From positions 1 to 64,000 of the IMG/VR virus record IMGVR_UViG_3300012988_000001: DNA of 64,000 nucleotides; one strand, 5' to 3'. Within the stretch, counting starts at the first letter, position 1. Each line of letters opens with the position of its first letter. Below the pieces are notes generated by a model that had not been told where the DNA came from, made no database searches, and saw nothing but the letters and a program-made list of their open reading frames with translations. The position numbers and the translations under genes are program-made. Positions 299 to 64,000 of the stretch are shown one piece after another.

Positions 299-380
299 AG
301 TACTTGCATTACTCCCTGATAAGCGTATAATGATTTGCATAGGGGGAAACAACTTCCCCCGCTATTAAGAGAAACGAAAA
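299..380 (+). repeat. Promoter-stem-loop-RBS cassette (PeSL-like), copy 1
   Basis: AGTAC-TTGCAT N16 TATAAT, GGGGGAA-acaac-TTCCCCC hairpin, TAAGAGA RBS. Confidence 0.85.
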
Positions 381-827
381 ATGACTATCTACTACCTGAC
401 TTTCAAAACTCCAGACGGCAACGTAACCGACGCGAACGTAACCGCAAACACTGTACATGAAGCAATGGCAGTACTGCAAGCCGAAGAGAAAGAAGCCGTG
501 ATCGTGTCGGTAGTAGATACTGACACAAATCTGGAAACGGTCATTGATCACTTCAATTTTTACAAAGGCCGCCCGTTACAAGACTGGTATCATATCGAGA
601 TTGAGACTCGCCAACTACCAGAAGAACAACAGCACTTTGAGTTAGGTACTAGCATTTGGGTTACTACCAGTAAGCAAGTATTTTTCTGTTCACGTATTCA
701 CGTTGAAAAGCGTATTAAGATCGGTGCAGACTCTTACAGTGGTCTGTTCACTACCAATGAGCTTATGAATTGTAATTATGTCAGTACTAGCATTTGCCAG
801 AAGATTGGCGGCAGTATCTGGGCGTAA
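381..827 (+). CDS. Hypothetical early protein
   Basis: ORF behind its own cassette, followed by a hairpin terminator. Confidence 0.8.
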   Translation: MTIYYLTFKTPDGNVTDANVTANTVHEAMAVLQAEEKEAVIVSVVDTDTNLETVIDHFNFYKGRPLQDWYHIEIETRQLPEEQQHFELGTSIWVTTSKQVFFCSRIHVEKRIKIGADSYSGLFTTNELMNCNYVSTSICQKIGGSIWA

Positions 828-834
828 CGATAAC

Positions 835-960
835 ACAAGGGGAGGCAATGCTTCCCCTGTTTATTTGTACAGTACTAAATCCTATAGACGGACTGCTGCA
901 CCCTATGGGTTAGCTTGTTTTCATGAGATACATAATACAGGATTTGATCAGTACTGTCAA
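835..960 (-). ncRNA. CCCACAGGGTGC-family non-coding element, copy A (putative ~90 nt sRNA)
   Basis: Minus-strand TTGACA(955-960) N17 TATTAT(932-937); core at 897-909 (CCCATAGGGTGCA variant); GC hairpin at 839-857; no ORF with an RBS. Confidence 0.6.
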
Positions 961-1132
961 CATCTTTTTCAAATGAATTTAAACGCTCTGTATCGCTCTA
1001 TAAGCCGTTCAACGAATAAGGCAAGCAAACATATTAGGGCAGTACTTTAAACGCGTTATAGGCTTGCTGGTGGCGTTATGCTTTAGTACTGAAATATAAG
1101 GAAAATGAAAAAAGATTGTCAATCTCTTAAAA

Positions 1133-1307
1133 AGTACTTGACGGATGATCGCAGTACTGGCATAATGTATCACATAGAGCGGCGGGACAGGTTAACTTCC
1201 CTAAGTAGACAGCCAGTAAGTCAGACGAAAATCTGGTGTCGCACTGAAAGAAAGATTGAAAAGAGTTTTAAAAAGTACTTGACAAGCTGGTGGGAAATTG
1301 AGATAAT
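1133..1307 (+). promoter_or_regulatory. Tandem sigma70-type promoters upstream of gene 1358
   Basis: TTGACG(1138) N17 CATAAT(1161) and TTGACA(1279) N17 GATAAT(1302); the second has a Chi site in its spacer. Confidence 0.8.
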
Positions 1308-1357
1308 GACCCCGTAGACAGCAAACAACCTAACTAAACCTTAAGAGGAAATATACA

Positions 1358-1954
1358 ATGACTACTACTAACAACGCAACCGAAGCACGTGTAACCCTGA
1401 AATCTGCTCTTGAAGCTGGCGACGTAAAAGGCTTGGGTGCAATCCTCGCTAAAATCGGTGGCGATAAAGACGGCGTATCAAAATTGGGCTTGACTTTCTC
1501 CCTCGCAGTAACGGCGGCGAAAGATGTACTCAAAGATCAGGCTAAACAGGCCGCCCTTAACGCAGAAGCCGCAGCGAAACGCCGCGAAGATAAAAAGGCA
1601 GCACGTCAGGCAGAGATCGAAGCACAGAACGCAGAGATCAAGGCAGAGAAAGAAAACATGATCAAGTTCCTCATGGACACCGTGAACGGCCTCGGCCTTG
1701 ACCTTGAAGCGGCAGAAGTAGCAGCACAGGCAGCCGTTGACAAAAAATACGGCGTAAGCGAAAAGGCTAAAAAGTACACCTTTACCCGCGTGGCAGTGGT
1801 TGTAGACGGTAAAGAATACGATATGCCAACGTCCGGTAACATGGTTCAAGTGCTTAAAGATGCCATGACCAAAGGCGGCTACGCAACACACAAAGACTTC
1901 ATTCTTGCACACGCTAAAAACGCAGAAGAAGCCGCAGCAGCTTTCGCTGAATAA
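1358..1954 (+). CDS. Ala/Lys-rich coiled-coil protein, probably highly expressed
   Basis: GAGGA RBS, two promoters, own terminator, AAA/GCA/GGC-biased codons. Confidence 0.85.
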   Translation: MTTTNNATEARVTLKSALEAGDVKGLGAILAKIGGDKDGVSKLGLTFSLAVTAAKDVLKDQAKQAALNAEAAAKRREDKKAARQAEIEAQNAEIKAEKENMIKFLMDTVNGLGLDLEAAEVAAQAAVDKKYGVSEKAKKYTFTRVAVVVDGKEYDMPTSGNMVQVLKDAMTKGGYATHKDFILAHAKNAEEAAAAFAE

Positions 1955-1971
1955 GTCAAGTAATTAAAACT

Positions 1972-2000
1972 AAAAGCCTCGCATAATGTGGGGCTTTTTT
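1972..2000 (+). terminator. Intrinsic terminator
   Basis: AAAAGCCTCGCA-TAA-TGTGGGGCTTTTTT. Confidence 0.8.
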
Positions 2001-2020
2001 TATTATAAAAGATTGTAGAA

Positions 2021-2100
2021 AGTACTTGCAATACTTTTCTAGTACTGTATAATGGTTTGCATAGGGGGAAACAACTTCCCCACTAATTAAGGAAAGAATC
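2021..2100 (+). repeat. Promoter-stem-loop-RBS cassette, copy 2
   Basis: AGTACTTGCAA...AGTACTGTATAAT, GGGGGAA/TTCCCC hairpin, TAAGGA. Confidence 0.85.
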
Positions 2101-2466
2101 ATGACACCTTTACAACTGATGGCTGACTCTTATATCACGGCGATGCATTGGGCTAGTACTGATGAAAATGGTGATCCACTCGACAACTACCCTACAGCAG
2201 CAGAGGCAAAAGATATTGCGGCAACTACCTGCAATAACTTCCTGAAAGTCCACGGTGATGATCTATCAATCGTAATGGGGTTACATCCTCATTATGGTTA
2301 TGAGCAAGCGGGGCATGATTTGTTTTTGACTCGCGAAGGTCATGGGGCTGGTTTCTGGGATCGTGATCTTGGTCACTATGGGGACGTGTTTACAAAGTAC
2401 TGTCAATCTATTGGTACGGCTGATCCGTATGTGGGCGATGATGGTTTTGTTTACGTTAATGTTTAA
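2101..2466 (+). CDS. Conserved phage protein (GHDxxLTRxGHGAGFWDR motif)
   Basis: AGHDLFLTREGHGAGFWDRD motif, recalled from phage hypothetical proteins; function unknown. Confidence 0.75.
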   Translation: MTPLQLMADSYITAMHWASTDENGDPLDNYPTAAEAKDIAATTCNNFLKVHGDDLSIVMGLHPHYGYEQAGHDLFLTREGHGAGFWDRDLGHYGDVFTKYCQSIGTADPYVGDDGFVYVNV

Positions 2467-2467
2467 A

Positions 2468-2548
2468 AGTACTTGCATTACTTCTTAAGTACTGTATAAT
2501 GATTTGCATAGGGGGAAACATCTTCCCCCATTAATTAAGGAAATGAAA
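2468..2548 (+). repeat. Promoter-stem-loop-RBS cassette, copy 3
   Basis: Same consensus as copy 2. Confidence 0.85.
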
Positions 2549-2767
2549 ATGGATCTGAATATCAAGATCAACCTCACAGTGAAACAAGTCAATGGTGATG
2601 AAGTTCTCCCACACCACGTAGACGGCCTGCGAGAAAATGCCATTGCTTATATTCTGGAAATGGTTAGCGATGATTGCCGTGAAGGGGAATTTAATGAAGT
2701 AATGGAAAACATCTGTGATGATGAAGAAACAGAATATCGCGGGTACTGGTCGGTTGTAGAGGAATAA
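2549..2767 (+). CDS. Acidic hypothetical protein; paralogue of 11064..11303
   Basis: Shared EVLxHH..L.E.A...I..M...GE...Y.G.WSV pattern; start moved to the RBS-supported ATG. Confidence 0.75.
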   Translation: MDLNIKINLTVKQVNGDEVLPHHVDGLRENAIAYILEMVSDDCREGEFNEVMENICDDEETEYRGYWSVVEE

Positions 2768-2769
2768 TC

Positions 2770-3030
2770 GTGGCTGTCGGATTTGCTAAAGACGGGGCAG
2801 AACAAAACGAGATTATAGCGGTCGTGGAGGCCGCTGTAAGCCACGCAAGGAATCAGCTAGGGGATAACACTACCCCATCGCTTACGCATTGCCTAGACTG
2901 TTCTAAGGCCATTCCTGAGCGTAGGCGTGAAGCTGTTAAGGGTTGCAAATATTGTATTGATTGTCAAGCTGAGTATGATACAATATTCAAACGCAATCCA
3001 CGTAACTGCTGGCACAGGAGTATGAGATGA
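2770..3030 (+). CDS. DksA/TraR-family C4 zinc-finger protein (YbiI-like)
   Basis: CLDCSKAIPERRREAVKGCKYCIDCQ; N-terminus MAVGFAKD resembles YbiI. Confidence 0.9.
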   Translation: MAVGFAKDGAEQNEIIAVVEAAVSHARNQLGDNTTPSLTHCLDCSKAIPERRREAVKGCKYCIDCQAEYDTIFKRNPRNCWHRSMR

Positions 3031-3124
3031 TCTTTAAGTATAACATGGGTTGCTGTTCGCGTCAAGGGTTTTATGCAGTATATTCTGACGGGGTAAACTA
3101 TCGTTATCGGTTTGTCAAGTACTT

Positions 3125-3246
3125 TATGTAGGGGAGAGATCCCCTGTTTATTTGTACAGTACTAAATCATAAGGACGGACTGCTGCACCCTGTGGGCCTG
3201 TTTTTGTCTATGCGTGTATTATGCCAGTACTCCACCAGCTTGTCAA
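3125..3246 (-). ncRNA. CCCACAGGGTGC element, copy B
   Basis: TTGACA(3241-3246) N17 CATAAT(3218-3223); core 3184-3196; hairpin 3131-3144. Confidence 0.6.
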
Positions 3247-3339
3247 CATCTTTTTTTCTGAATATTATTTGAAGAAAGTACTTGCATTACTTTTGCAGTA
3301 CTGTATAATACTTACATCAACCACAGAGAGGAAAGCAAA

Positions 3340-3561
3340 ATGACTAAGTACCTGATGGAAGTTTTTACTACTGAAAACGTAGCAACCAATGTAAAGCGTT
3401 ATTACAAGGTTGTTTGTGGTGTAGGCCGCAGAATCAGTAAGGCAGACTATCAGAAGCTGGAAGATAACGCGGAGGGGGCTTGCTGCTTTAGTACTGTAAA
3501 CACGAAAACCCATATTAAGCAATACAAAACTTTAGAGTTCTATACTGATTTAGTTTTGTAA
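3340..3561 (+). CDS. Hypothetical early protein
   Basis: Own promoter (3282-3309) and GAGGA RBS. Confidence 0.8.
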   Translation: MTKYLMEVFTTENVATNVKRYYKVVCGVGRRISKADYQKLEDNAEGACCFSTVNTKTHIKQYKTLEFYTDLVL

Positions 3562-3562
3562 A

Positions 3563-3642
3563 AGTACTTGCATTACTTCTTAAGTACTGTATAATGATTT
3601 GCATAGGGGGAACAACTTCCCCCACTAATTAAGGAAACGAAA
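3563..3642 (+). repeat. Promoter-stem-loop-RBS cassette, copy 4
   Basis: Promoter nearly identical to copy 3. Confidence 0.85.
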
Positions 3643-3867
3643 ATGGCACTTATCAAGATTATCGAATCAAACGTAGCAGGTCAAGAAAGCACTTTCATTG
3701 AATATGATACTGATTCGTTTGACGAACGTTATGCGGTGCAATACGGTGGATCTGGTATCACGTTCAATGGCACAAAGGAAGGTTGGAAATGTGCGGTTGA
3801 AGATTATTTGTCAAACGTTAAACACCAATTAGAAAGTGCCGCACAAGAAGGTGGCTACCTCGCATAA
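3643..3867 (+). CDS. Hypothetical early protein
   Basis: ORF behind cassette. Confidence 0.8.
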   Translation: MALIKIIESNVAGQESTFIEYDTDSFDERYAVQYGGSGITFNGTKEGWKCAVEDYLSNVKHQLESAAQEGGYLA

Positions 3868-3948
3868 AGTTTTACTCCAGTACTTGACATACTAATCGAG
3901 TACTGGCATAATGACTTTATCGAAACGAAACACTATTAAGGAATTATC

Positions 3949-4242
3949 ATGGCTAAGTATTGCAGAGAGTGCGGCGGGTTGTGTGTAGTAGATGATTTTG
4001 GTGTATCGAATCATATCTATGAAAACGGTGATATTCACCACGTGCTGGATGGTGATCATGTGGCTATCCCTGAGATGGAAGAAACATTGATCAATGAGGA
4101 AGTTTTCGACTTCTGCAAAGATCATTATGAATGTTTCAACGCATACCCTACTGAGTGCGAATTGTCAAACGGTGATGTTTATTCTTTTGCCGAAATGATG
4201 AAAGTACTTTCAGAGGAACAAAAGCAAGAAATTGAAAAATAG
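3949..4242 (+). CDS. Hypothetical protein with N-terminal CxxC
   Basis: CRECGG; own promoter TTGACA(3884) N17 CATAAT. Confidence 0.8.
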   Translation: MAKYCRECGGLCVVDDFGVSNHIYENGDIHHVLDGDHVAIPEMEETLINEEVFDFCKDHYECFNAYPTECELSNGDVYSFAEMMKVLSEEQKQEIEK

Positions 4243-4323
4243 TACTTGCATTACTTTCTGATTACTGTATAATGTTTTGCATAGGGGGAAACATCTTCCC
4301 CCATTAATTAAGAGAATAATATC
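4241..4323 (+). repeat. Promoter-stem-loop-RBS cassette, copy 5
   Basis: Consensus cassette. Confidence 0.85.
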
Positions 4324-4704
4324 ATGGCTAACCAAATCACTCCAGCACAGATCTTTAACAAGTACGAAATTCAGATTGTACTGGTAGAGTATGTTCCATC
4401 CTATGGATGGTCTGACGCTTGCGTAGCCGAAGATGTAGCCGATGCAAAGCGTATCATTAAAGAGTATGCCGCAGAAGGTATCAGCCTGAAAAGTGTTCGC
4501 CGCTGGGTGCTTAACAAAGATGCGTTTCTCTGTCAAGCCCTGTTGAACTTCTGCCGTGACTACTATCGCCGTACTGGTGGACTTTGGCCTAATGAGGTTG
4601 AAGTACTGAAAGCTAACGGGGTGAAGAAATTCACCTTGACTTTGAAAGAAATCGAAGAAGTACTGGGTAATGATTGCCGTTTAGTTACTTCTCAGGCAGT
4701 ATAA
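4324..4704 (+). CDS. Hypothetical early protein
   Basis: ORF behind cassette. Confidence 0.8.
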   Translation: MANQITPAQIFNKYEIQIVLVEYVPSYGWSDACVAEDVADAKRIIKEYAAEGISLKSVRRWVLNKDAFLCQALLNFCRDYYRRTGGLWPNEVEVLKANGVKKFTLTLKEIEEVLGNDCRLVTSQAV

Positions 4705-4769
4705 AAAGTACTTGACACTATACGGGGATATGATATTATATCCCCATCTTAAGCAAAGAAGGTAATACA

Positions 4770-4961
4770 ATGTCTAGAATCTCAAACGCCGCCTTAGATG
4801 CTTTCGCACTGAAAGTAATGGCTGTTAGTACTAACAAGTCATGGGGTACTGATCAGTTTAAACGTCTGGTAATTTGTGCGGGTAACGGCATGACTGTAGA
4901 AGAAACCGCCAAAGAAATCGATGCAATGACTATTGACAAAGATCAGGATAATGGACTATAA
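4770..4961 (+). CDS. Hypothetical early protein
   Basis: Own promoter (TTGACA at 4712) and GAAGG RBS. Confidence 0.75.
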   Translation: MSRISNAALDAFALKVMAVSTNKSWGTDQFKRLVICAGNGMTVEETAKEIDAMTIDKDQDNGL

Positions 4962-5142
4962 TAAGGTTAACAAGCGAGTACTGGAGTTATCAAGGAAAGC
5001 ACGTAAAGAGTACACCTTAGATCGTTCAATTAGCAACTATCATTTAATGCAAGGTGATAAGTTTATTGTTATTGACGAACCGCTGGAAGTAGTGTATATT
5101 GTAGTTAATGCGATGATTCGCGACAAAACGAGGATTAAGTAA
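4933..5142 (+). CDS. Hypothetical protein
   Basis: Overlapping operon ORF. Confidence 0.6.
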   Translation: MTKIRIMDYNKVNKRVLELSRKARKEYTLDRSISNYHLMQGDKFIVIDEPLEVVYIVVNAMIRDKTRIK

Positions 5143-5390
5143 TGCGTACTATCTTTGACCTGCAAGACAAAGGAACTATGGCACGTAGATCAATGGTTAC
5201 TGTAGGCGGGAAACAACACTGGAGCGGTTATGTATGCTTCATTGTTGGCGGGAAAATGTATGAGCGGGTAGTATACCACAAAGAGCTTAATTACATTCTT
5301 TTCCGTAAAGAAGTGATCGCTATCGAACCAGAAGCCCTCAAACCGATTGCAGGGGCTTGGAATAAAGAATCGCTGAATGTATCAGCTTAG
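5142..5390 (+). CDS. Hypothetical protein
   Basis: TAATG coupling; hairpin at 5399-5417 follows. Confidence 0.7.
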   Translation: MRTIFDLQDKGTMARRSMVTVGGKQHWSGYVCFIVGGKMYERVVYHKELNYILFRKEVIAIEPEALKPIAGAWNKESLNVSA

Positions 5391-5440
5391 TTAATTAAAG
5401 GCCGCACAGAGCGGCCTATCGCTCATATGGGGGTATTATA

Positions 5441-5584
5441 ATGAATCCACGCAACATATTAATCAAACCACCAGCAACAAAGGCAGAACGGGCAGAACGC
5501 CGACGCAACCGCATGAAGTCACTTGTAAAGGCTGGCTATTCACGTTCACACGCTTTCAAACTTGCAAAGGAAGAAATAAAATGA
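5441..5584 (+). CDS. Small basic protein (47 aa, not in ORF track)
   Basis: GGGGG RBS; hand translation MNPRNILIKPPATKAERAERRRNRMK... Confidence 0.55.
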   Translation: MNPRNILIKPPATKAERAERRRNRMKSLVKAGYSRSHAFKLAKEEIK

Positions 5585-5704
5585 AACTTTGTCAAGTACT
5601 GGACGAGATTGAAAATATTGTTGACAGAAAACAACAATATGATACACTGTTATCAAGAAGTCAGGCAAATGAAGTTGAAAGGCAACGGATAGAAGGGGCA
5701 GAAT

Positions 5705-6007
5705 GTGAATCGTTATACGCAACCGCAGCACAGGGGAATAAGTACAGCAGCACAACGTCGCAAGCCAGCAAAGACTAAACACAGAAAGTACTTAAGAGAA
5801 CCCGTTCCCGTAGATACTAGCTGGCTGATGGATTATGACGTACAGCATATGTATTTGAATGGGGGATGGTCATTTGGTAACGGTATGATCTGGGGTAGTA
5901 CTGGCAGTGGTAAGAGTAATATCGGTGCAATGTATTTTAGTAAATTGAATGGCTGGACTTCTGCCGCCCCGAAAAAAGATTTTGAATCCCCGTTCAAAAA
6001 GGCTTGA
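5705..6007 (+). CDS. Hypothetical protein
   Basis: GTG start; start uncertain; overlaps ORF 5581..5778. Confidence 0.4.
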   Translation: MNRYTQPQHRGISTAAQRRKPAKTKHRKYLREPVPVDTSWLMDYDVQHMYLNGGWSFGNGMIWGSTGSGKSNIGAMYFSKLNGWTSAAPKKDFESPFKKA

Positions 6008-6072
6008 CACAATACCGGCTTAGTGAGATAATACTTACAAGCCGGAACAAAGGCACATACCCACAGGGTGCG
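6004..6072 (+). ncRNA. CCCACAGGGTGC element, copy C
   Basis: TTGACA(6004) N17 GATAAT(6027); core 6060-6071; converges on copy D. Confidence 0.55.
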
Positions 6073-6109
6073 GAAAAGTATTCAGTACTTGAGAATGATA
6101 ATCATTTAC

Positions 6110-6188
6110 ATCAACAGACGGATTCCTGCACCCTGTGGGCTAGTTGTTTTCATGGCTTTATCATGCCAGTACTGGATAGGTTTGTCAA
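6110..6188 (-). ncRNA. CCCACAGGGTGC element, copy D
   Basis: TTGACA(6183-6188) N17 CATGAT; core 6127-6139 followed by TCCGTCTG. Confidence 0.55.
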
Positions 6189-6220
6189 CTACTTTTTAAT
6201 GAAAAGAATTTGAAAATAAT

Positions 6221-6298
6221 GCTTGCAGTACTTTTAAATTAGCGTATAATGTTTTGCATAGGGAGAGATAATCTTTCCCACTAATTAAGGAAATGAAA
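6221..6298 (+). repeat. Promoter-stem-loop-RBS cassette, copy 6
   Basis: TTGCAG..TATAAT; hairpin variant GGGAGA/TTTCCC. Confidence 0.8.
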
Positions 6299-6664
6299 AT
6301 GGAACGTATCGTTTATGGTCGTGGTGCAAGTGCTGAAGTTGTTCCTGTAGAACTGCTGGCGATGTTAACCGAAATGATTCGCCGTAGTGATATTAGTTTT
6401 CCTCCGTCCGTAATGCCGTATGCTATCAGCTACGAAGTACGCAAGACTCCTAAGTACTGGAAGATTGACCGTGTAGAACTGGATAAAGATACAGGAGAAA
6501 TCCGTCAATATGGGCGTAGCTCTGCTGGTGCTGTAGACTTTGACGGAAACGTGTTTAAGTCTGCTAGTTATAACGCGGTGGCTAAAGGTATTCGCGGGAA
6601 TATCTTTGTTAATAACGGATTTAATGCAATTACTGGTGATGGTTATATCCGTTATTTAAATTAA
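6299..6664 (+). CDS. Conserved phage protein (GNVFKSASYNAVAKGIRGNI motif)
   Basis: Motif resembles a widespread phage hypothetical family (G.v.K.AS..A.AK..R.N); function unknown. Confidence 0.75.
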   Translation: MERIVYGRGASAEVVPVELLAMLTEMIRRSDISFPPSVMPYAISYEVRKTPKYWKIDRVELDKDTGEIRQYGRSSAGAVDFDGNVFKSASYNAVAKGIRGNIFVNNGFNAITGDGYIRYLN

Positions 6665-6667
6665 GAA

Positions 6668-6750
6668 AGTACTTGCAAAGTAATCAAAACAGCGTATAAT
6701 GTTTTGCATAGGGGGAGATAAACTCCCCCACTATTAAGAGAAGAAATATC
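6668..6750 (+). repeat. Promoter-stem-loop-RBS cassette, copy 7
   Basis: Consensus cassette. Confidence 0.85.
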
Positions 6751-6990
6751 ATGGCACAGAAAATCACTCGCACCGAAGTTAATCATTATCTGGCAGTACT
6801 GAATGGTGTATTGGCAGCGATGGGTGCAAAGTATCGTTATAAATTGCAACCTGTTGCTGGTGGTTATACACTGGAGAAGTACAATACAGAGGGCGATCTG
6901 GTCGATACTTGTATTGGTGGTCAATCTTTACGTGCAGTATATGAGATCATTCGTTTTTCTGCAAACATGATCGGGGATAACGTGAAGTAA
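6751..6990 (+). CDS. Hypothetical early protein
   Basis: ORF behind cassette. Confidence 0.8.
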   Translation: MAQKITRTEVNHYLAVLNGVLAAMGAKYRYKLQPVAGGYTLEKYNTEGDLVDTCIGGQSLRAVYEIIRFSANMIGDNVK

Positions 6991-7038
6991 TTATTATCAA
7001 AAGTACTCTTGACAATACTTTGAGAGTACTTTATAATA
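6987..7038 (+). repeat. 52-bp promoter block identical to 10981-11032
   Basis: GTAATTATTATCAAAAGTACTCTTGACAATACTTTGAGAGTACTTTATAATA occurs at both sites. Confidence 0.85.
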
Positions 7039-7069
7039 CTTACATCACTTAAGCAAAGAGAGAAACAAA

Positions 7070-7378
7070 ATGGAAAAGACTAAACTGTTCGTAGCTCAGA
7101 TTACCCTGCGTCATGGCGAATATGAAACGCAAGTTCGAAAACTGATCCTTGCGAAGTCGCAAATTGAAGCCGAACTGTTCGCCCGTAGCAATGAAGGAAT
7201 GGCGATCTATGACGGCTCATGCATCGAAGATGGTAACAGCTATCAGGAAGAAGGTCAACCAAATACATGGTACTTCTGCGGCGGGGATTGGTGCGTTACT
7301 CTGGGCGTGATCTGGGAGATGGAAGATCGCGAAATGGCGAAACAAGTAATTGCTAGCGGCTTAGTATCTTTCTTGTAA
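7070..7378 (+). CDS. Hypothetical early protein
   Basis: Own promoter and RBS. Confidence 0.8.
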   Translation: MEKTKLFVAQITLRHGEYETQVRKLILAKSQIEAELFARSNEGMAIYDGSCIEDGNSYQEEGQPNTWYFCGGDWCVTLGVIWEMEDREMAKQVIASGLVSFL

Positions 7379-7390
7379 TTACTTTCAAAA

Positions 7391-7474
7391 AGTACTTGCA
7401 TTACTTTCTGATTACTGTATAATGTTTTACATAGAGAGGGGAAACGGTTCCCCTCCTAAATTAAGGAAAGTCCC
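7391..7474 (+). repeat. Promoter-stem-loop-RBS cassette, copy 8
   Basis: Hairpin variant GAGGGGAA-acgg-TTCCCCTC. Confidence 0.85.
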
Positions 7475-7900
7475 ATGAGCAACAAAGTTAACATGACCGG
7501 TTTCGCTAACGACGCAAATTCCCCTACCATCCGTGCAGAAGGGTTGATCGGTGAAACGCAAGTGTTTATCGAGTACGATAAACTTACTGGCACTATTGTT
7601 GACAGTACTTTCAGGGAGTCATCCGATCTGTTCAAAGATATGGATAAGCAAGCCCGTCAGATTCTGGTGTTTAAAGTTCCTGTAGATCTGGCTGGTGATT
7701 CTTACACAGTACGCCAGTACAATCAAATGAATGAATGGCATGACAAACTGAAAGCGGCTGAGAAAGTACTTTCAGAAATGGATCGCCTTGTTACTTCTGA
7801 GGACTGGATGTATAACCAGTTAGGCCAAACTACTGGAAGCATTATCGACGCATTAAACGAGGTACGCATTGCACTGGATGCCCGTATAAGCAATTTATAA
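7475..7900 (+). CDS. Hypothetical early protein
   Basis: ORF behind cassette. Confidence 0.8.
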   Translation: MSNKVNMTGFANDANSPTIRAEGLIGETQVFIEYDKLTGTIVDSTFRESSDLFKDMDKQARQILVFKVPVDLAGDSYTVRQYNQMNEWHDKLKAAEKVLSEMDRLVTSEDWMYNQLGQTTGSIIDALNEVRIALDARISNL

Positions 7901-7911
7901 AGTTTAAAAAG

Positions 7912-8015
7912 GGGTTGACTTCGGTTAGCCCTTTTGCTATTATATAGTCATTGGCAGATAAGCTACTAACCCACAGGGTGCAATAGTCTGTCTGTTAAAA
8001 AGATATTAGTACTTT
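7912..8015 (+). ncRNA. Terminator/promoter hybrid plus CCCACAGGGTGC element, copy E
   Basis: GGGTTGAC-TTCG-GTTAGCCC-TTTT; TTGACT N17 TATTAT; core 7970-7982; 45 nt identical to copy H. Confidence 0.6.
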
Positions 8016-8094
8016 AATCTTTTATGAAAATAGTACTTGCATTACTTTCTGAATAGCGTATAATTACTTTATTGAAACAAACGAGGGTAAAGAG

Positions 8095-8346
8095 ATGGAA
8101 GATTTTAAAATTGTTAAACAGTTCTCACTAGCACAGAAAGGTAATCAATTCTTCTGTACTATTTCACGTAGAGAAACCCCAAATACAGAAACTGGTCTGA
8201 CTTGGGAAGTGTTAAAACAGACTAACACAGAAAAGCCAGTACTTGAAACTTATGATCGTTATGCGATTGCGGAAATGGATTTTACTCACTACGTTATCGA
8301 GTCATTGAATACAGATCATTTTTATCAGTTTTCAGCAACAAAATAG
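8095..8346 (+). CDS. Hypothetical early protein
   Basis: Own promoter and GAGG RBS. Confidence 0.75.
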   Translation: MEDFKIVKQFSLAQKGNQFFCTISRRETPNTETGLTWEVLKQTNTEKPVLETYDRYAIAEMDFTHYVIESLNTDHFYQFSATK

Positions 8347-8423
8347 TTGACTTACTTCTGAATAAGCGTATAATGGTTTGCATAGGGGAGATAGTGTCTC
8401 CCCACTAATTAAGGAAATGAAAA
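8345..8423 (+). repeat. Promoter-stem-loop-RBS cassette, copy 9
   Basis: TTGACT..TATAAT; GGGGAGA-tagtg-TCTCCCC. Confidence 0.85.
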
Positions 8424-8696
8424 ATGATCACTCTGTTAACTCGTGAAGAAATCGAAACAGTACTGACTACTAACATTCAGGACTGGAAACTAAACGCAGA
8501 CGTATGCGAGGCACAGGATCTTAACGAGGAACTAACGGAGGATGATATTAGTACTATTATCTCCCCTGAGTTCTATGATGATATTCATAGCATGGATGAT
8601 ACATGGAACGTATTAGAAAAACACTTCCTTGACACTGAGCTAGACATTTACTCGCGAGATACTTTTATTTTGATTCATAACATTTATAATCGTTAA
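8424..8696 (+). CDS. Acidic hypothetical early protein
   Basis: Very D/E-rich; ORF behind cassette. Confidence 0.8.
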   Translation: MITLLTREEIETVLTTNIQDWKLNADVCEAQDLNEELTEDDISTIISPEFYDDIHSMDDTWNVLEKHFLDTELDIYSRDTFILIHNIYNR

Positions 8697-8697
8697 A

Positions 8698-8778
8698 AGT
8701 ACTTGCATTATTTTCTGATTACTGTATAATGTTTTGCATAGGGGGAAACATCTTCCCCCACTATTAAGAGAATGAATT
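8698..8778 (+). repeat. Promoter-stem-loop-RBS cassette, copy 10
   Basis: Nearly identical to copy 5. Confidence 0.85.
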
Positions 8779-9246
8779 ATGAATAGCAAAGAATTTACCG
8801 CAAAAGTTACCGCCGCTTTCCTCGCAGTATTCCCTAACGGTTGGGTACATGTTGGACGCCTCGCATTGGGTGGTGATGTTTGCATGGCGTTTGGTTTGAC
8901 TCGCGATCAAAAAGATTGCAGTTCAAACATTCGCGAAAATGATACTATGCGTATGACTTTCGCGATCCACGGCATGAAGTTTGGCAGTGATGATAATATC
9001 ACCGAAAAGCTGGAAATGGAACCGTACTACTCCGCGATAAGCACGATTCCACGCAAGCAATACTATGCTATGGGGCATGACAAGATCAAGACACGTAAAA
9101 CTACTAATACACCAGAAAAGCTCTTAGAAACGCTTGCACGCTATTTTAAAGCGGCTGGTGTTCAAGTACAGACATTAGCAGAAGCAAACGAGCTTTACAA
9201 TCAGGATCGCATTAAGCCGGAATATCTGCAAATTAATGTGAAATAG
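8779..9246 (+). CDS. Hypothetical early protein
   Basis: ORF behind cassette. Confidence 0.8.
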   Translation: MNSKEFTAKVTAAFLAVFPNGWVHVGRLALGGDVCMAFGLTRDQKDCSSNIRENDTMRMTFAIHGMKFGSDDNITEKLEMEPYYSAISTIPRKQYYAMGHDKIKTRKTTNTPEKLLETLARYFKAAGVQVQTLAEANELYNQDRIKPEYLQINVK

Positions 9247-9310
9247 TACTAGACAACCTAACGGGGCTATTATATAATAGTCCCATCTTAAGCAAACAGG
9301 AATAAAGAAA

Positions 9311-9541
9311 ATGTCAAATCGTGAAATCATTGCAACAGTACTGGTGCGTACACTGAATGCTTCGCGTTTAACCCAAGTTCGTAATATCGCCACTGCACAC
9401 GAAAACTGCTGGCGGGAGTTTTTGAATGGTAGTACTAGCTCACAGAATGCCGCTGATCATAAACTGACTGAGGCAGTTACTGCTGCGGTGGCAGAACTGG
9501 ATGATAAAGCAATTGAATATATTGCTACATTATTAAAATAA
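9311..9541 (+). CDS. Hypothetical early protein
   Basis: Own promoter with the -10 inside an inverted repeat (9263-9284). Confidence 0.75.
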   Translation: MSNREIIATVLVRTLNASRLTQVRNIATAHENCWREFLNGSTSSQNAADHKLTEAVTAAVAELDDKAIEYIATLLK

Positions 9542-9626
9542 GTACTTGCATTACTTCTGAATTCGCGTATAATGTTTTATATCGAGAGGGGGAAATGGTT
9601 CTCCCTCCGAACTTAAGGAAAGTATC
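9541..9626 (+). repeat. Promoter-stem-loop-RBS cassette, copy 11
   Basis: GAGAGGGGGAA-atgg-TTCTCCCTC variant. Confidence 0.85.
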
Positions 9627-9944
9627 ATGACTATCTCCAACGTTCAAGCTAACTTCGAAAACGAAATCATTGCTCAAGCCCTGCGTTTAGATGACGGTGT
9701 AGCAAGAATTAACTACGGTTTCAATTCAGGTGGTTACGAACAATATCAGTACTTCATTACTGCTGATGGCGGTATTCTGGGGATTAATACTGTGATGGTA
9801 AACATCCAGAGCATTAACTTCAATGATCCCGATGATAGCCAGTGGTACATTGTAGGGGTAGACGTGAACTATGAAGACGACACCCTAACCGATGACCACA
9901 CAGGGGAACGTCTGGAAAGTGCTTACGGCGAACCTGAAGAATAA
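9627..9944 (+). CDS. Conserved acidic phage protein
   Basis: GGYxxY..T.DGG.L...QW..VG.DVN.ED..L.DD.TGER.ESAYG pattern; function unknown. Confidence 0.8.
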   Translation: MTISNVQANFENEIIAQALRLDDGVARINYGFNSGGYEQYQYFITADGGILGINTVMVNIQSINFNDPDDSQWYIVGVDVNYEDDTLTDDHTGERLESAYGEPEE

Positions 9945-9947
9945 CAC

Positions 9948-10070
9948 GAAAGGGGGCAGATAGCCCCCTGTTTATTTGTACAGTACTAAAACCTATAGAT
10001 ACATTTGTGCACCCTGTGGGCTAGTGTTCTCTATGGGATACATTATGCCAAAATGCTGGTGGCTTGTCAA
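9948..10070 (-). ncRNA. CCCACAGGGTGC element, copy F
   Basis: TTGACA(10065-10070) N17 CATAAT(10042-10047); core 10008-10020; hairpin 9951-9969. Confidence 0.6.
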
Positions 10071-10162
10071 CAACTTTTTTAACGAGTTAATTAAAATAAA
10101 GTACTTGCATTACTTTGGTAGTACTGTATAATGTTTATATCAAGACGAGAGGACGAAACAAA

Positions 10163-10702
10163 ATGATTACTACACTGTACCACGGCAGCAGCAATTTTGA
10201 CCACAGACCGGGTTACCTCGGCGGGAAGAAAGATAACTTTCAATACGGTGTAGGGCTGTACACTACCAACTCTTACAACTGGGCAGAACTTTACGGGCGA
10301 TCTGTGTATGCTCTTACAGTAGAACTGAATGAAGCACAACACGCGAACAACGTAGAAATTAGCATTGAAAATCTTATGTACTGGACTAAATGCTATTGCT
10401 CGCAAAAGGTTGCGAAGCTCTTTGTAAAAGAGTTTAGCCAACGCGAAACAATGTCAGGGCAGCGGTTTGAATTGTGGCTGTACTGGAATGTAAGACGCTT
10501 GCACTTGATTGCAAAAGAGTTAGCCGCTTTCTTTACTGCTCAAGGCATCACACACAACAGCGATGCGGGGAACTACGGCGGCAAACTGATCCGAATCTAT
10601 GATTTCGATATTATCACACAAAGCACTAAAGATAAGAAAGTACTTAAAGATCTACAATATGCAACAACAGAACTACCTCAATATATCTTAGAAAGGGCTT
10701 GA
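10163..10702 (+). CDS. Putative ADP-ribosyltransferase-fold protein
   Basis: TLYHGSS...GVGLYTT...YG..VY match ART strand motifs; own promoter. Confidence 0.5.
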   Translation: MITTLYHGSSNFDHRPGYLGGKKDNFQYGVGLYTTNSYNWAELYGRSVYALTVELNEAQHANNVEISIENLMYWTKCYCSQKVAKLFVKEFSQRETMSGQRFELWLYWNVRRLHLIAKELAAFFTAQGITHNSDAGNYGGKLIRIYDFDIITQSTKDKKVLKDLQYATTELPQYILERA

Positions 10703-10759
10703 CGGTATAACGGGGCTATTATATAATAGTCCCATATTAAGCAAACAAGGAATTAAATT

Positions 10760-10984
10760 ATGTCTCTGTACTCATTAGATATTCAAACACCAGATTTCAT
10801 CACTAAAATAATTGTATCATCGGAACAGCGAGAATTAGATGATGCAAAGGCTGAAGTTCTGGAATGGGCGAAAGGTTTTTATCCTGCTGGTACTAACTTA
10901 CAGGTAAAATGGATCTCGCACGAAACGAAAATTGATTTACATTATTTTGTATCAGGTGGTTATTCCGCTATTAAAATTCTGTAA
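10760..10984 (+). CDS. Hypothetical early protein
   Basis: Own promoter and RBS. Confidence 0.75.
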   Translation: MSLYSLDIQTPDFITKIIVSSEQRELDDAKAEVLEWAKGFYPAGTNLQVKWISHETKIDLHYFVSGGYSAIKIL

Positions 10985-12556: not shown

Positions 12557-12563
12557 TAAAAAA

Positions 12564-61572: not shown

Positions 61573-61599
61573 ATACTTCCCAACTCATGGAGGATAAAC

Positions 61600-63030
61600 A
61601 TGAAAGATATTCTATCAATTCTAACTGAGATCAAAAATGATCCCAGTACTCTAGCTAAGAAACGTATTCTTACTGAGAACAAAGATAATCCAGTACTAGC
61701 ACGTGTACTCAAGCTCGCTCTTGATCCGGGCATTGTAAGTGGTTATAAAAAGATACCAGCACCACTACATGGTTTTTGTGATGAAATGGATTTAAATACT
61801 GCTCTAGATGAGTTAGATGCAATCTATTCTCGTAAACTTACAGGCCACACAGGTCGGGATTTCATTGCAAACATCCTTGGTTCAGTTTCAGATAACGATG
61901 CAGAAGTAATCCGTCGCGTACTAACCAAAGATCTAGAATGTGGTGCAAGTGACAAGATTACCAATGACGTATTCGGTAAAGGTTTTATCAAAGATGAACC
62001 TTACATGCGTTGTTCACTAGTAGATACTAAAACTATTCGTAACATTGATTTTGCAACTTACGGATATGCAGTATCTGAAACTAAGATGGATGGTCAGTAC
62101 TTAAACCATACAATCATCAATAACCAATTGACCTGTACTTCCCGTAATGGTAAAGTATATGACTTCCTCGGTGCTCGTGATGAGCTAATGGCAAACCTAG
62201 CACAGTCCGTACAGAAGCGTGATAATCGTTTCGGTAGCGGCGTTGTGTTCAACGGTGAATGCCTAATGATGGACGAAAGTGGACGTATTCTACCTCGCGA
62301 AACTGGTAATGGTATTATCCAGAAAGCGGGCAAAGGTACTATGACACCATTTGATTCTATGCGTGTGGTATTCGTTCTATGGGATGTTCTACCTTATGAT
62401 GCATTCCAAGAAGGTATTTGGGAAGTATCCCGTAAAGAGCGTCGTGAGCTATTAGAATCGGCTATTCAAGATATCGACTCTGAGTTTATTCAGATGGTTG
62501 AGTACCAAAAAGTACTAAACGTTACGGAAGCATTCGAGCATAACACACTTCTAATGGAACGTGGTGAAGAGGGTTCAGTACTAAAATGTGAAAGTGCTAT
62601 TTGGAAGTCTCACACATCTCCTAAGCAGTTGAAGATGAAACTCAAGATGCAACTCGACCTACGTATTGTCGGTTTCAATGAAGGTGAGAAGAAGCGTACC
62701 GGGATGCTTGGTTCATTGATTCTAGAATCTGAAGATGGTCAATTGACCACAAACTGCGGTACTGGTATCAAAGAGAAAGATGCTGAGTGGACATTCAAAA
62801 GTATCTGGGAAAAACGCGATGAGCTAATGGGTAAAGTTGTTACTATTGAATGTAACGAACTAACCAAAGACAAGAACTCTCTAATTCCAAAAGTGTTCCT
62901 ACCTGTATTCGTGGAATTCCGTTTTGACAAAGAAACCTGCGATACGTATGAACGTATTCTAGAAATCCGTGAAAGTGCAGTAGAAGTATTTGCTCAGACT
63001 ATTTCGGAGTCACTAAAAGGTAAAAAATAA
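61600..63030 (+). CDS. lig: ATP-dependent DNA ligase (T4 gp30-like)
   Basis: KMDG motif I, FNGE, LWDV, EGSVLK, OB-fold PVF..FR.DK. Confidence 0.95.
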   Translation: MKDILSILTEIKNDPSTLAKKRILTENKDNPVLARVLKLALDPGIVSGYKKIPAPLHGFCDEMDLNTALDELDAIYSRKLTGHTGRDFIANILGSVSDNDAEVIRRVLTKDLECGASDKITNDVFGKGFIKDEPYMRCSLVDTKTIRNIDFATYGYAVSETKMDGQYLNHTIINNQLTCTSRNGKVYDFLGARDELMANLAQSVQKRDNRFGSGVVFNGECLMMDESGRILPRETGNGIIQKAGKGTMTPFDSMRVVFVLWDVLPYDAFQEGIWEVSRKERRELLESAIQDIDSEFIQMVEYQKVLNVTEAFEHNTLLMERGEEGSVLKCESAIWKSHTSPKQLKMKLKMQLDLRIVGFNEGEKKRTGMLGSLILESEDGQLTTNCGTGIKEKDAEWTFKSIWEKRDELMGKVVTIECNELTKDKNSLIPKVFLPVFVEFRFDKETCDTYERILEIRESAVEVFAQTISESLKGKK

Positions 63031-63485
63031 TGCAAGTATTCACCGTGTATATTTTCAATGAACGATTGAGAAGTGATAAAAAGCAAGGGGATTTGGCAAT
63101 CGTCGTCCCCTTTGCCATGATTGATAAGTACTCTGTTCCAATTCCCGGTTATTCTAAAATGGCTGCAATGGCAGATGCTGTGTACGGGTATGATATTGAT
63201 AAAGGTCATTTCACTACGTATAAGAATCGTCAAATCGGTTCTGGTTACAATCATAACGTACCTTTTGAGTACTTAGTAAATTCTCGTAGTATCTGGTTCA
63301 TGAATGATTACATTGGTGAAGGAATGATGCTTAACCAATTGCTTGTGGGGCAACCAACGCCCCCACAAATGTATGGTAAAAAATATTGTGAAATATCACT
63401 TGCTGGGATGAGCCATATTGAGCTATACTTGTCAGCATTGAGTGGCTACTATGGAGAAGACGATGAAATTTGCAGTGATATCTGA
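63030..63485 (+). CDS. Hypothetical protein
   Basis: TAATG coupling. Confidence 0.7.
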   Translation: MQVFTVYIFNERLRSDKKQGDLAIVVPFAMIDKYSVPIPGYSKMAAMADAVYGYDIDKGHFTTYKNRQIGSGYNHNVPFEYLVNSRSIWFMNDYIGEGMMLNQLLVGQPTPPQMYGKKYCEISLAGMSHIELYLSALSGYYGEDDEICSDI

Positions 63486-64000
63486 TATTCACGGCGGGGT
63501 GGACTATCTTCATAGCGGAGACTTCAGTGATGTAGTACTAATCATTGCTGGAGACTTCGATGAAGCAAAGCGTTCCCGTTATCGGACAGAAATTGAAAAG
63601 TTGTGTGCTGTATTCAAGAATGTAGTACTAGTTCCCGGTAACCACGAGTACTATGGATCTAACATTCATAAGACTCACAAAGTACTGGAGCGTATGGATA
63701 TCGAAATCGATAACTTTATTTTTCTACAAAATAACTTTGTGTGGATTGATGATGTACTGGTTGTTGGTTCCACATTGTGGACGGACTACAACAATGATCC
63801 ATTGGTGAAGTTTGATGCTCGTATGAAGATGAATGATTACAAGCATATCCGTCATGGTACAGAATCTGAACCGTGGAAGAAAAAGCTCACAGTCGATGAC
63901 GTTGAGTTTATGCATTATGTTTCTAAGAAATATATCAAAGAAACTATTGACAGCATACGGATTCGGGTGCATAATGATATCAAGGTTGTGGTCGTCACAC
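63463..64000 (+). CDS. Calcineurin-like metallophosphoesterase (partial, runs off the window)
   Basis: Hand translation: ISDIHG, IAGD, VPGNHEYY, GSTLWTD. Confidence 0.88.
   Translation, partial: MKFAVISDIHGGVDYLHSGDFSDVVLIIAGDFDEAKRSRYRTEIEKLCAVFKNVVLVPGNHEYYGSNIHKTHKVLERMDIEIDNFIFLQNNFVWIDDVLVVGSTLWTDYNNDPLVKFDARMKMNDYKHIRHGTESEPWKKKLTVDDVEFMHYVSKKYIKETIDSIRIRVHNDIKVVVVT

Follow-up and report, generated by a model that had tools for sequence, protein, structure and literature searches.

HIP1 (GCGATCGC) is the highly iterated palindrome of cyanobacteria, a short word shared by a whole clade, found in all reading frames and in intergenic DNA, in genomes that carry an orphan methyltransferase. 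Its function is unsolved, its one-letter variants are reportedly biased to the positions outside an internal methylase site, and methyl-directed very-short-patch repair has been proposed as its origin. Other iterated words are better understood. Chi (GCTGGTGG), DUS/USS and KOPS are asymmetric self-marking words, read by translocating machines in one orientation, whose benefit grows with number or coverage. The pac site of phage P1 contains iterated Dam hexamers (TGATCA/G), confined to pac, whose methylation controls cutting, and P1 encodes its own adenine methyltransferase. The stoperators of Cluster A mycobacteriophages are 13-bp asymmetric repressor sites, about 20-35 per genome, mostly intergenic and oriented with transcription, besides the true operator at an early promoter. 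Finally, the SlmA-binding site of E. coli, GTGAGTACTCAC, is palindromic and read by a dimeric protein (PMC3020112), with tens of sites in the host.

We analysed a 64,000-nt stretch (the window; positions 1 to 64,000 of IMGVR_UViG_3300012988_000001) of a 366-kb jumbo phage genome, in which a sequence-only reading had described AGTACT as a HIP1-like iterated palindrome. The observation was confirmed and is stronger than was first described. AGTACT occurs 211 times in the window, against 18.4 ± 4.4 in dinucleotide-preserving shuffles (maximum 31) and 20.8 expected from mononucleotide composition. In the whole genome there are 910 copies against 121 expected, and the word is the most over-represented of all 4096 hexamers (O/E 7.5). 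The six copies listed in the sequence-only reading for 22261-23610 (22274, 22371, 22474, 22711, 23311, 23602) are all present, against about 0.44 expected for 1350 bp. As had also been claimed, the three copies within one gene fall in three frames: relative to ORF 22014-22622, those at 22274, 22371 and 22474 are in frames 2, 0 and 1, reading CAA-GTA-CTA (Q-V-L), AGT-ACT (S-T) and xAG-TAC-TCA (Q-Y-S). We found no published description of this enrichment. The dispersed copies are as follows.

299-63990, no strand: 211 dispersed copies of AGTACT, with the extended symmetric preference T-T-n-[C/A]-AGTACT-[G/T]-n-A-A; about 142 lie in called CDS, in all three frames.

To test whether the enrichment disappears once codon usage or the GTAC tetramer is controlled for, as had been proposed beforehand, we first shuffled synonymous codons, keeping each protein and the codon usage of each gene. 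This gave 39.7 ± 5.0 copies against 142 observed in the window CDSs, and 218 ± 13 against 781 genome-wide; codon-order shuffling gave 138 ± 11, whereas a dicodon-preserving shuffle would keep frame-0 AGTACT by construction. All three frames are enriched (336/162/283 copies against 106/36/76 under synonymous shuffling), and intergenic density is higher still, at 3.15 per kb. Control words of the same composition (ACTAGT, TCATGA, TGTACA, ATGCAT, GTATAC) sit at their shuffle expectation. AGTACT makes up 33% of all GTAC against 9.5% from base composition, and an order-3 Markov model still leaves a 2.3x excess; these controls do not refute the observation. However, given the separate flank preferences of GTAC (A before in 55%, T after in 54%), the hexamer is only 1.10x their product (910 against 825); the signal is therefore hierarchical, a GTAC core plus A/T flanks, and the real unit could be GTAC with graded flanks.

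We then considered how often the word is used where the proteins allow it. Of the Ser-Thr dipeptides, 53% are written AGTACT (15% expected), while the reversed ACTAGT, built from the same codons, is used at 8%. V-L is written GTA-CTN in 56% (25% expected), and 69% of those follow a codon ending in A, against 30% overall; [KQE]-Y-Txx reaches 64% against 11% expected. The dipeptides themselves are inflated (S-T 1.42x, V-L 1.29x), while T-S and L-V stay at 0.97, that is, protein sequences have been bent to fit the word. The flanks are symmetric and alike in four genomes, with T at -4/-3 and C/A at -1, mirrored on the 3′ side; in RaK2 the preference sharpens to CAGTACTG. This argues for two-fold symmetric reading of duplex DNA, not for an RNA or codon effect.

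The sites are also spaced out. In 1-kb windows var/mean is 0.72, with 19 empty windows against 34 expected, and pairs closer than 100 bp number 102 against about 150. An opportunity is used 0.41 of the time with a neighbouring site within 100 bp, against 0.64 at 100-800 bp (p = 1.7e-9); pooled over four genomes the figures are 0.46 and 0.56 (p = 1.2e-8). A context-blind mutational process would not give this.

The enrichment is shared by the seven relatives RaK2, 121Q, GAP32, CBB, Munch, fENko-Kae01 and Hallingskeid, over about 50% amino-acid divergence, with 850–1313 copies against 134-200 for the reversed control word, and it amounts to 7.5-8.3x in four genomes. No enrichment was seen in PA5oct (15 against 40), T4 (29 against 51), T5 (23 against 40) and ValKK3 (73 against 121). 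E. coli K-12, the one host chromosome counted, is depleted, with 400 copies in 4.64 Mb against 1147 for the control word, so that the phage DNA carries the word about 29-fold more densely. Positions are partly conserved (0.41, 0.30 and 0.19 against 0.22, 0.12 and 0.10 for random hexamers), but use at aligned opportunities is almost independent between distant lineages (0.40 against 0.37 for RaK2); no particular intragenic site is needed, and only density or coverage matters. Lineage-specific genes are as dense as core genes (2.7 against 2.1 per kb).

Two kinds of special position were found. Precisely, two AGTACT boxes sit at fixed positions in the early σ70 promoters, and the densest cluster surrounds the physical genome terminus. 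The corresponding features of the window are the following.

1-18400, plus strand: early, promoter-rich region of small genes, inferred to be part of the direct terminal repeat (DTR), with the highest AGTACT density in the window (5.9 and 3.9 per kb in the first two 10-kb bins, against about 2.2 elsewhere).
838-876, plus strand: terminator hairpin followed by the conserved tail GTTTATTTGTAC-AGTACT-AAA; the module recurs at 3128-3163 and 9951-9987.
1133-1166, plus strand: two-box early promoter, AGTAC-TTGACG, a 17-nt spacer holding the second AGTACT (1153-1158), and CATAAT.
2021-2053, plus strand: two-box early promoter (boxes 2021-2026 and 2041-2046; TTGCAA ... TATAAT).
2468-2500, plus strand: two-box early promoter (boxes 2468 and 2488).
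3277-3309, plus strand: two-box early promoter (boxes 3277 and 3297).
3563-3595, plus strand: two-box early promoter (boxes 3563 and 3583).
3879-3912, plus strand: two-box early promoter (boxes 3879 and 3899; TTGACA ... CATAAT).
7002-7037, plus strand: variant two-box promoter with boxes 23 bp apart (AGTACT-C-TTGACA ... GAGAGTACTT-TATAAT); a second copy lies at 10996-11031.
10100-10132, plus strand: two-box early promoter (boxes 10100 and 10120).
11465-11498, plus strand: two-box promoter with boxes 21 bp apart.
17104-17136, plus strand: two-box early promoter (boxes 17104 and 17124); a further one with a weaker -10 lies at 17484-17516.

The architecture AGTAC-TTGACA-N13-cAGTACTG-TATAAT is conserved in this phage, Kae01, GAP32 and RaK2 while the spacers vary, and at least 12 independently predicted -35 hexamers begin at the last T of an AGTACT. 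The first 18.4 kb are homologous to the 19.7-kb DTR of fENko-Kae01 (PMC11218385). The densest cluster lies at the DTR start of Kae01 and CBB, and around the single-copy junction motif CCCCTTCC(G/A)CTATAT in this genome, Kae01 and GAP32; in this genome the motif is at genome position 363,719, 2.4 kb upstream of window position 1. Promoter boxes and the terminus cluster could, however, partly reflect the same pressure acting on free non-coding positions.

The comparison with HIP1 made in the sequence-only reading holds: the density is similar, the word is present in all frames and in intergenic DNA, and its one-letter variants are biased to the outer positions; but AGTACT is an AT-rich hexamer in a virus rather than a cell, is tied to fixed positions in σ70 promoters and to the genome terminus, and its sites repel each other. 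This phage is also Chi-rich (36+21 copies against 1.7-1.9 expected per strand), but AGTACT, about ten times as dense as Chi, is a palindrome with mirror-symmetric flanks and no orientation, probably read by a two-fold symmetric protein. The cluster where genome ends are cut, in a phage with its own adenine methyltransferase, parallels P1 pac, although here it is only the peak of a genome-wide distribution. With respect to stoperators, there are about 900 palindromic sites, mostly inside genes. The six central bases of the SlmA site are identical to AGTACT, but not its required flanks (see below).

Our preferred reading, held tentatively and on sequence evidence alone, is that AGTACT (more fully a weak 8-14-bp palindrome, TTn[C/A]-AGTACT-[G/T]nAA) is a positively selected recognition word for a sequence-specific protein of this phage clade, reading double-stranded DNA symmetrically and most likely a dimeric binding protein. 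In this view, selection has written the word into more than half of all places where the proteins tolerate it, so that roughly every 400 bp of phage DNA carries a site and extra sites within about 100 bp add little; phage DNA would be marked or covered about 29 times more densely than E. coli K-12 DNA. The two promoter boxes, 20 bp apart and on one face of the helix, one abutting the -35 hexamer and the other 1 bp upstream of the -10 hexamer of the host-σ70 early promoters, would let a bound protein compete with or modulate RNA polymerase, from which we infer early-gene shut-off. The terminus cluster suggests a role where genome ends are made or where DNA first enters the cell. We consider as demonstrated the enrichment, the selection at DNA level, the symmetry, the spacing, the clade distribution and the promoter and terminus positions, whereas that a protein binds the word, that it is phage-encoded and what binding achieves are inferred. 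Against this reading, Pfam and PHROGs searches gave no HTH_3, TetR, AbrB/MazE, PrlF or σ70-r4 hit in the genome and none in 20 early proteins of the window, most early proteins having no annotation, and the information is concentrated in a contiguous 6 bp, more typical of restriction or modification enzymes than of helix-turn-helix dimers.

A bolder extension, which we regard as doubtful but of great interest if true, is that RaK2-like jumbo phages, whose DNA shows no bulk modification in the one relative tested, use a sequence word instead of a modified base as their mark of self. An undescribed phage protein recognising AGTACT about every 400 bp would, through this dense, evenly spaced coverage, tell phage DNA apart from host DNA, with 29-fold fewer sites in E. 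coli K-12, for protection, transcription take-over or packaging, and would also switch off the early promoters and organise the terminus. This would be a new principle of self/non-self discrimination in viruses and a tractable model for the function of iterated palindromes such as HIP1.

The interpretation offered in the sequence-only reading was partly supported. Selection does act on the DNA, enrichment is indeed odd for this phage, which has zero copies of 23 other palindromic hexamers and of GCGC, and a target for a DNA-organising or modifying protein fits the evidence; the proposed link to the adenine methyltransferase was not established. That reading missed that the word is clade-wide, forms two fixed boxes in the early promoters and clusters at the genome terminus, and that sites are spaced out. 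The methyltransferase is the following.

42014-42550, plus strand: a 178-aa PF05869/TIGR01712-type phage N6-adenine methyltransferase (MTase), the only DNA methyltransferase found among the four MTase families searched; its reading frame overlaps those of a MORN/YwqK-like protein (41469-42017) and a nucleotidyltransferase-like protein (42543-43076).

The main rival, possible but less well supported, is that AGTACT or its GTAC core is the target of this orphan Dam-like enzyme, and that the word acts through its methylation state. Fully methylated virion DNA and newly replicated DNA would then differ at the early promoters and at the terminus, as in P1 pac, and methylated sites spread over the genome would mark it as self. 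In fact, no C5, N4/N6 beta-class or D12 enzyme was found, and the orthologue is present in all eight AGTACT-rich genomes checked and absent from PA5oct, T4 and T5, although this co-occurrence is confounded by common descent. The enzyme scores below the equivalog cut-off of its family (80.9 against 97 bits), so its specificity, which cannot be read from sequence, may differ from that of characterised members. The contiguous core and the outer bias of one-letter variants would also fit, and fEgEco12 DNA is cut normally by EcoRI, NsiI, ClaI and HindIII (PMC13070987), so the enzyme is not a non-specific adenine methylase. On the other hand, it has no evident target-recognition domain, and its characterised relatives (T1, HP1 and VT2 Dam) act on GATC. 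Methylation alone does not explain why more sites are better or why sites are spaced out, as a reader of the mark would still be needed, and the graded symmetric flanks reaching +/-4 look like a binding-energy profile rather than a sharp enzyme site. The RaK2 authors report restriction and bisulfite data only as data not shown, without ScaI or RsaI (PMC3622015).

It is unlikely, but not excluded, that a host protein of Enterobacterales reads the word, as a third word-level adaptation to host machinery beside Chi enrichment and restriction-site avoidance, for example by recruiting or titrating a nucleoid-associated or division-control protein such as SlmA. The enrichment is confined to relatives infecting Enterobacterales and absent from the Pseudomonas relative PA5oct, it travels together with Chi enrichment and GCGC/palindrome avoidance, the word is depleted in E. 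coli K-12, and no phage-encoded reader was found in the searches above. However, SlmA requires G1 and T2 (and A11, C12) around the AG..CT core (PMC3020112), and these flanks are not enriched: left GTR is 27 against 28.3 expected, right YAC 19 against 25.2, and the full site 1 against 0.8, while a purine at -1 is disfavoured. SlmA hijack is thus not supported. Moreover, T4 and T5 infect the same hosts without the enrichment, and no other host protein is known to us with this specificity.

Two further readings are improbable to the same degree. In the first, AGTACT would be a preferred site of a phage nicking enzyme, a restriction-like nuclease or the type II topoisomerase (A|GTAC|T would give the 4-base stagger of type IIA enzymes), making ends or nicks for recombination-dependent replication, clamp loading or decatenation of a 366-kb genome. 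The palindromic contiguous core, the even coverage and the cluster where ends are made would fit. No ScaI-family nuclease or MutH was detected, although nucleases often escape profile searches and the RE_ScaI control gave a hit in no genome, and the gene upstream of the MTase is MORN/YwqK-like, not nuclease-like, so that a ScaI-like restriction-modification pair was not found. Besides, nicks on both strands of a palindrome would break the DNA, and the terminus junction itself is CCCCTTCCGCTATA|T, not AGTACT. In the second, the word would have no function and would result from biased mutation, repair or gene conversion turning near-matches into AGTACT, as in the very-short-patch model. The saturating and nearly independent use of opportunities, the density of lineage-specific genes and the raised GTACT and AGTAC one-off variants would be in line with this. 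However, no transition neighbour is depleted (AATACT/AGTATT 1.14, AGCACT/AGTGCT 1.76, GGTACT/AGTACC 2.26), the only depleted neighbour being AGGACT/AGTCCT, no Vsr, MutS or MutH gene was found, and a drive does not explain the interference between sites, the promoter positions conserved across genera or the terminus cluster; repair drive is not supported.

An artefact of codon, dicodon or GTAC usage or of a repeat family, suggested by the common use of AGT, ACT, GTA and TAC codons and by an order-4 Markov model that predicts 189 of the 211 copies but already contains the pentamers, is not supported and very improbable, given the shuffles, frames and control words above and flanks that are not conserved beyond +/-4. 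The longest stretch without the word is the following.

18372-22274, plus strand: largest AGTACT-free gap in the genome (3.9 kb), holding an HNH/NUMOD4 homing-endonuclease gene (18572-19099) and the start of an array of unannotated genes of 150-240 aa.

The window is the first 64 kb of a 366,160-bp virus record with direct terminal repeats. A nucleotide search of the phage collection returned no match, and relatives were hence reached by protein search. The DNA ligase is 77% identical in protein to those of Klebsiella phage fENko-Kae01 (hereafter Kae01) and Salmonella phage Munch and 66-67% identical to those of Escherichia phages 121Q and PBECO4, whereas the next relatives, T4-like phages, fall to 34%. 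The phage is therefore a member of the RaK2/121Q/GAP32-like jumbo myoviruses of Enterobacterales. Almost all of its genes lie on the + strand. Genes were called with our own simple ORF and codon-score caller, which missed some genes (for example 22014-22622), hence the split between coding and intergenic sites is approximate. The loci of the window that are referred to below, other than those of the word itself, are the following.

1 to about 18,400: probably the early region within the terminal repeat.
7908-7943, 12560-12595, 13208-13233 and 15341-15376: a repeated regulatory cassette that lacks AGTACT.
18572-19099: an HNH/NUMOD4 homing-endonuclease gene.
About 19100-36200: an array of about 30 consecutive genes of 150-240 aa.
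41469-43076: three genes of about 180 aa each with overlapping frames, including the Dam-like adenine methyltransferase (MTase) at 42014-42550.
49416-50633 and 51364-52293: T4-type RNA ligase 1 and polynucleotide kinase/phosphatase, respectively, which lie close together and form a tRNA-repair pair, as in T4.

AGTACT occurs 211 times in the window, against 18.4 ± 4.4 in dinucleotide shuffles, and 910 times in the genome, against about 121 expected. It is the most over-represented of all hexamers, and the next hexamers in the ranking are its overlapping neighbours. The sequence-only reading, which had reported the word as recurring throughout the window, with six listed positions and three copies in three different reading frames of one gene, was correct in its observation, positions and frames included. 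Its interpretation, namely a target for a DNA-organising protein, a modification enzyme or a nicking activity with the adenine MTase as one candidate, was supported only in part, since the link to the MTase rests on weak evidence.

To test whether codon usage could produce the signal, we shuffled synonymous codons within each gene, which left 218 ± 13 coding copies against 781 observed, and we shuffled codon order, which left 138 ± 11; all three frames are enriched 3- to 7-fold. In the window alone there are 142 coding copies against 39.7 ± 5.0, while five control words of similar composition sit at expectation. Ser-Thr is written AGTACT in 53% of cases (15% expected), whereas Thr-Ser uses the same two codons, as ACTAGT, in only 8% of cases. 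Val-Leu is written GTA-CTN in 56% of cases (25% expected), and 69% of those follow a codon ending in A (30% overall). [K/Q/E]-Tyr-(Txx) carries the word in 64% of cases (11% expected). The dipeptides themselves are inflated, S-T by a factor of 1.42 and V-L by a factor of 1.29, against 0.97 for the reverse orders; hence, the DNA word shapes the proteins. On the basis of these shuffles and control words, an artefact of codon, dicodon or GTAC usage was rejected. A repeat family was rejected as well, because flanks beyond +/-4 are not conserved.

The flanks of coding sites show mirror-image preferences, with T at -4 and -3 and C/A at -1, matched by G/T at +1 and A at +3 and +4. The same holds in Kae01, GAP32 and RaK2, and in RaK2 the C at -1 rises to 3.1x, giving CAGTACTG. 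In a genome transcribed almost wholly in one direction, an RNA-level or translational signal would not be mirror-symmetric, whereas two-fold recognition of duplex DNA would be. The signal is hierarchical: GTAC is 2.2x enriched, A before it and T after it are each about 55%, and the hexamer is 1.10x the product of the two.

The sites are also spread out. In the central 320 kb, counts in 1-kb windows have a var/mean of 0.72, only 19 of 319 windows are empty, where a Poisson model predicts 34, and pairs closer than 100 bp number 102 against about 150 in local permutations. More directly, a coding opportunity is used in 41% of cases if another site lies within 100 bp, and in 64% of cases at 100-800 bp (Fisher p = 1.7e-9); pooled over four genomes the figures are 46% and 56% (p = 1.2e-8). 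Regional differences in density would bias this test the other way. Such diminishing returns argue for selection on coverage and against a context-blind mutational drive.

The enrichment is clade-wide. We counted 937 copies in RaK2, 903 in 121Q, 850 in Munch, 941 in Kae01, 1313 in Hallingskeid, 1011 in GAP32 and 1235 in CBB, against 134-200 for the reversed control word. No enrichment is seen in the related Pseudomonas phage PA5oct (15 against 40), T4 (29 against 51), T5 (23 against 40) or ValKK3 (73 against 121). In PA5oct (MK797984), a genome of 33% GC with no iterated palindrome, the most over-represented hexamers are GC-rich (GGCGGC, GCGCCG and CGGCGG, at 6-7x), which may reflect local GC-rich elements. 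Sites are conserved in aligned orthologues about twice as often as random hexamers (0.41 against 0.22, 0.30 against 0.12 and 0.19 against 0.10). Most of this follows from conserved amino-acid context plus a high probability of use: at aligned S-T positions each lineage uses the word in 55-68% of cases, and joint use with RaK2 is near independence (0.40 against 0.37). Lineage-specific genes are as dense as core genes (2.7 against 2.1 per kb). The pressure is therefore on density, everywhere, and it is continuing.

The largest AGTACT-free gap holds the HNH/NUMOD4 homing-endonuclease gene, which is probably a recent insertion that has not yet acquired the word. The array of genes that follows has a low AGTACT density and no Pfam or PHROG match, and a similar array is annotated in RaK2 (ORF417-440). 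We considered the region at 18.5-36 kb as a possible paralogue array of diversified nucleases, but no domain hits were obtained apart from the one HNH gene, and this reading was rejected.

About 45 of 129 non-coding sites lie in σ70 promoters. Nine pairs exactly 20 bp apart in the first 18 kb read AAAAGTAC-TTGCAT/TTGACA ... cAGTACTG-TATAAT, in which box 1 shares its last T with the -35 hexamer and box 2 ends one base before the -10 hexamer; one such two-box promoter lies at window 3277-3309. An independent consensus scan placed at least 12 -35 hexamers exactly at the last T of an AGTACT. The architecture is kept in Kae01, GAP32 and RaK2 while the spacers differ, and the two boxes lie on one face of the helix. 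The second repeated cassette of the early region, which lacks the word, is a terminator hairpin, AAAGGGTTGACTTCGGTTRGCCCTTTT, whose stem holds a TTGACT -35-like hexamer, followed by TATTAT, and it looks like a combined terminator and promoter.

The densest cluster in Kae01 (11-12 sites in 600 bp) lies at the start of its 19.7-kb terminal repeat (repeat length from PMC11218385), and CBB is the same. Both junctions read ...AGTACT-N-ACCCCTTCCGCTATA|TC..., with the putative end at CCCCTTCCGCTATA|T. The motif occurs once each in this genome, Kae01 and GAP32, always inside the densest cluster. In the form CCCCTTCC(G/A)CTATAT it was located at genome positions 363,719-363,733 (2.4 kb upstream of window position 1), at 340,358 in Kae01, at 2,784 in GAP32 and at 355,9xx in CBB, and it coincides with the start of the direct terminal repeat as the Kae01 and CBB records are laid out. 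It is followed by an inverted repeat (TATCTTCTCTT AAAGAGAAGTATA). It is likely the end-forming site, and it predicts the physical terminus of this phage.

As regards the host, the E. coli K-12 chromosome (NC_000913) has 400 copies in 4.64 Mb against 1147 for the reversed control word, that is, an under-representation of about 2.8-fold, for which codon usage, SlmA sites and past restriction systems are possible reasons; the phage is 29 times denser. The whole phage genome (positions 1-366160) is also completely devoid of GCGC (0 against about 485 expected), and 23 of 64 palindromic hexamers have zero copies (for example AAGCTT, GGATCC, CTGCAG, GGTACC and GTCGAC). The same holds in RaK2, GAP32 and Kae01 across different hosts, with 16-27 palindromic hexamers at zero in the RaK2-like genomes, but not in PA5oct. 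Either host restriction pressure is very broad or the phage attacks these sites itself. Chi (GCTGGTGG) is enriched about 20-fold, with 36 copies on the + strand and 21 on the - strand against 1.7-1.9 expected per strand (for example at window 1062-1069 and 12944-12963). It is also enriched in Kae01 (36/10), RaK2 (15/3) and GAP32 (14/8) and absent from PA5oct, and it probably protects linear DNA from RecBCD. DNA of the relative fEgEco12 is cut by ten enzymes as predicted (PMC13070987), so there is no bulk modification, and a non-specific adenine methylase is hence unlikely. These phages seem to adapt to host DNA enzymes through their choice of words.

We then searched for a protein that could read the word. 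The only DNA methyltransferase family found is a 178-aa PF05869/TIGR01712-type adenine MTase at 42014-42550, while no C5, beta-class or D12 MTase and no ScaI-type nuclease was found. Its orthologue is in every AGTACT-rich genome checked and absent from PA5oct, T4 and T5; in fact, the AGTACT-rich genomes are one clade, so the association is weak evidence. The MTase gene is the middle one of three genes that are syntenic in all relatives, the upstream one encoding a MORN/YwqK-like repeat protein (its Kae01 orthologue was detected by LC-MS/MS) and the downstream one a nucleotidyltransferase-like protein. Searches of the genome with HTH_3, TetR_N, MazE/AbrB, PrlF and σ70-r4 profiles, and of 20 early proteins with Pfam, returned nothing, and the same was true for MutS, MutH and Vsr.

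Our preferred reading, which we put forward tentatively, is a symmetric DNA-binding protein, probably phage-encoded, that would cover and mark the genome and act at early promoters and at the terminus. Precisely, the word statistics and positions described here are results of the sequence analysis, whereas the existence of such a protein, its origin and its binding and activity are inferred from sequence alone. It is possible, although less likely, that the word is the target of the Dam-like MTase and would work through its methylation state, with P1 pac as the analogy; the specificity of the enzyme for AGTACT is a supposition, and the two readings are not exclusive. A host factor is unlikely; as for the example of an SlmA hijack, the flanks of the SlmA-binding site are at chance level. 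A cutting, nicking or topoisomerase site is more doubtful still, and for a ScaI-like restriction-modification system no endonuclease hit was obtained, the gene next to the MTase being MORN/YwqK-like. As improbable is a functionless drive: for a VSP-type repair drive there is no depleted neighbour of the word, and no Vsr, MutS or MutH gene was found. An artefact can practically be dismissed.

We infer that a six-letter word that occupies more than half of all permitted places in about 350 kb, distorts amino-acid sequences and persists across several phage genera must be read by something important, and nothing in the annotated proteomes explains it. In the open-access literature on RaK2, CBB, fENko-Kae01, fEgEco12 and EJP2, and in jumbo-phage reviews, we found no description of AGTACT enrichment. 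Highly iterated palindromes are already represented by cyanobacterial HIP1, whose purpose has been an open question for decades. Since several members of the present clade grow on laboratory E. coli, Klebsiella and Salmonella, the question becomes testable with pull-downs (on concatenated TTCCAGTACTGGAA), methylomes and recoded genome segments. The word could also show how a giant phage without bulk DNA modification, as shown for one relative, fEgEco12, tells its DNA from that of the host and times its early genes. From a practical point of view, any AGTACT-specific host restriction enzyme should exclude these therapeutic-candidate phages unless the site is protected. Moreover, the word and the accompanying GCGC-free, Chi-rich signature identify this clade in metagenomes, the two-box promoters mark the early regulon, and the single-copy junction motif predicts the physical genome ends.
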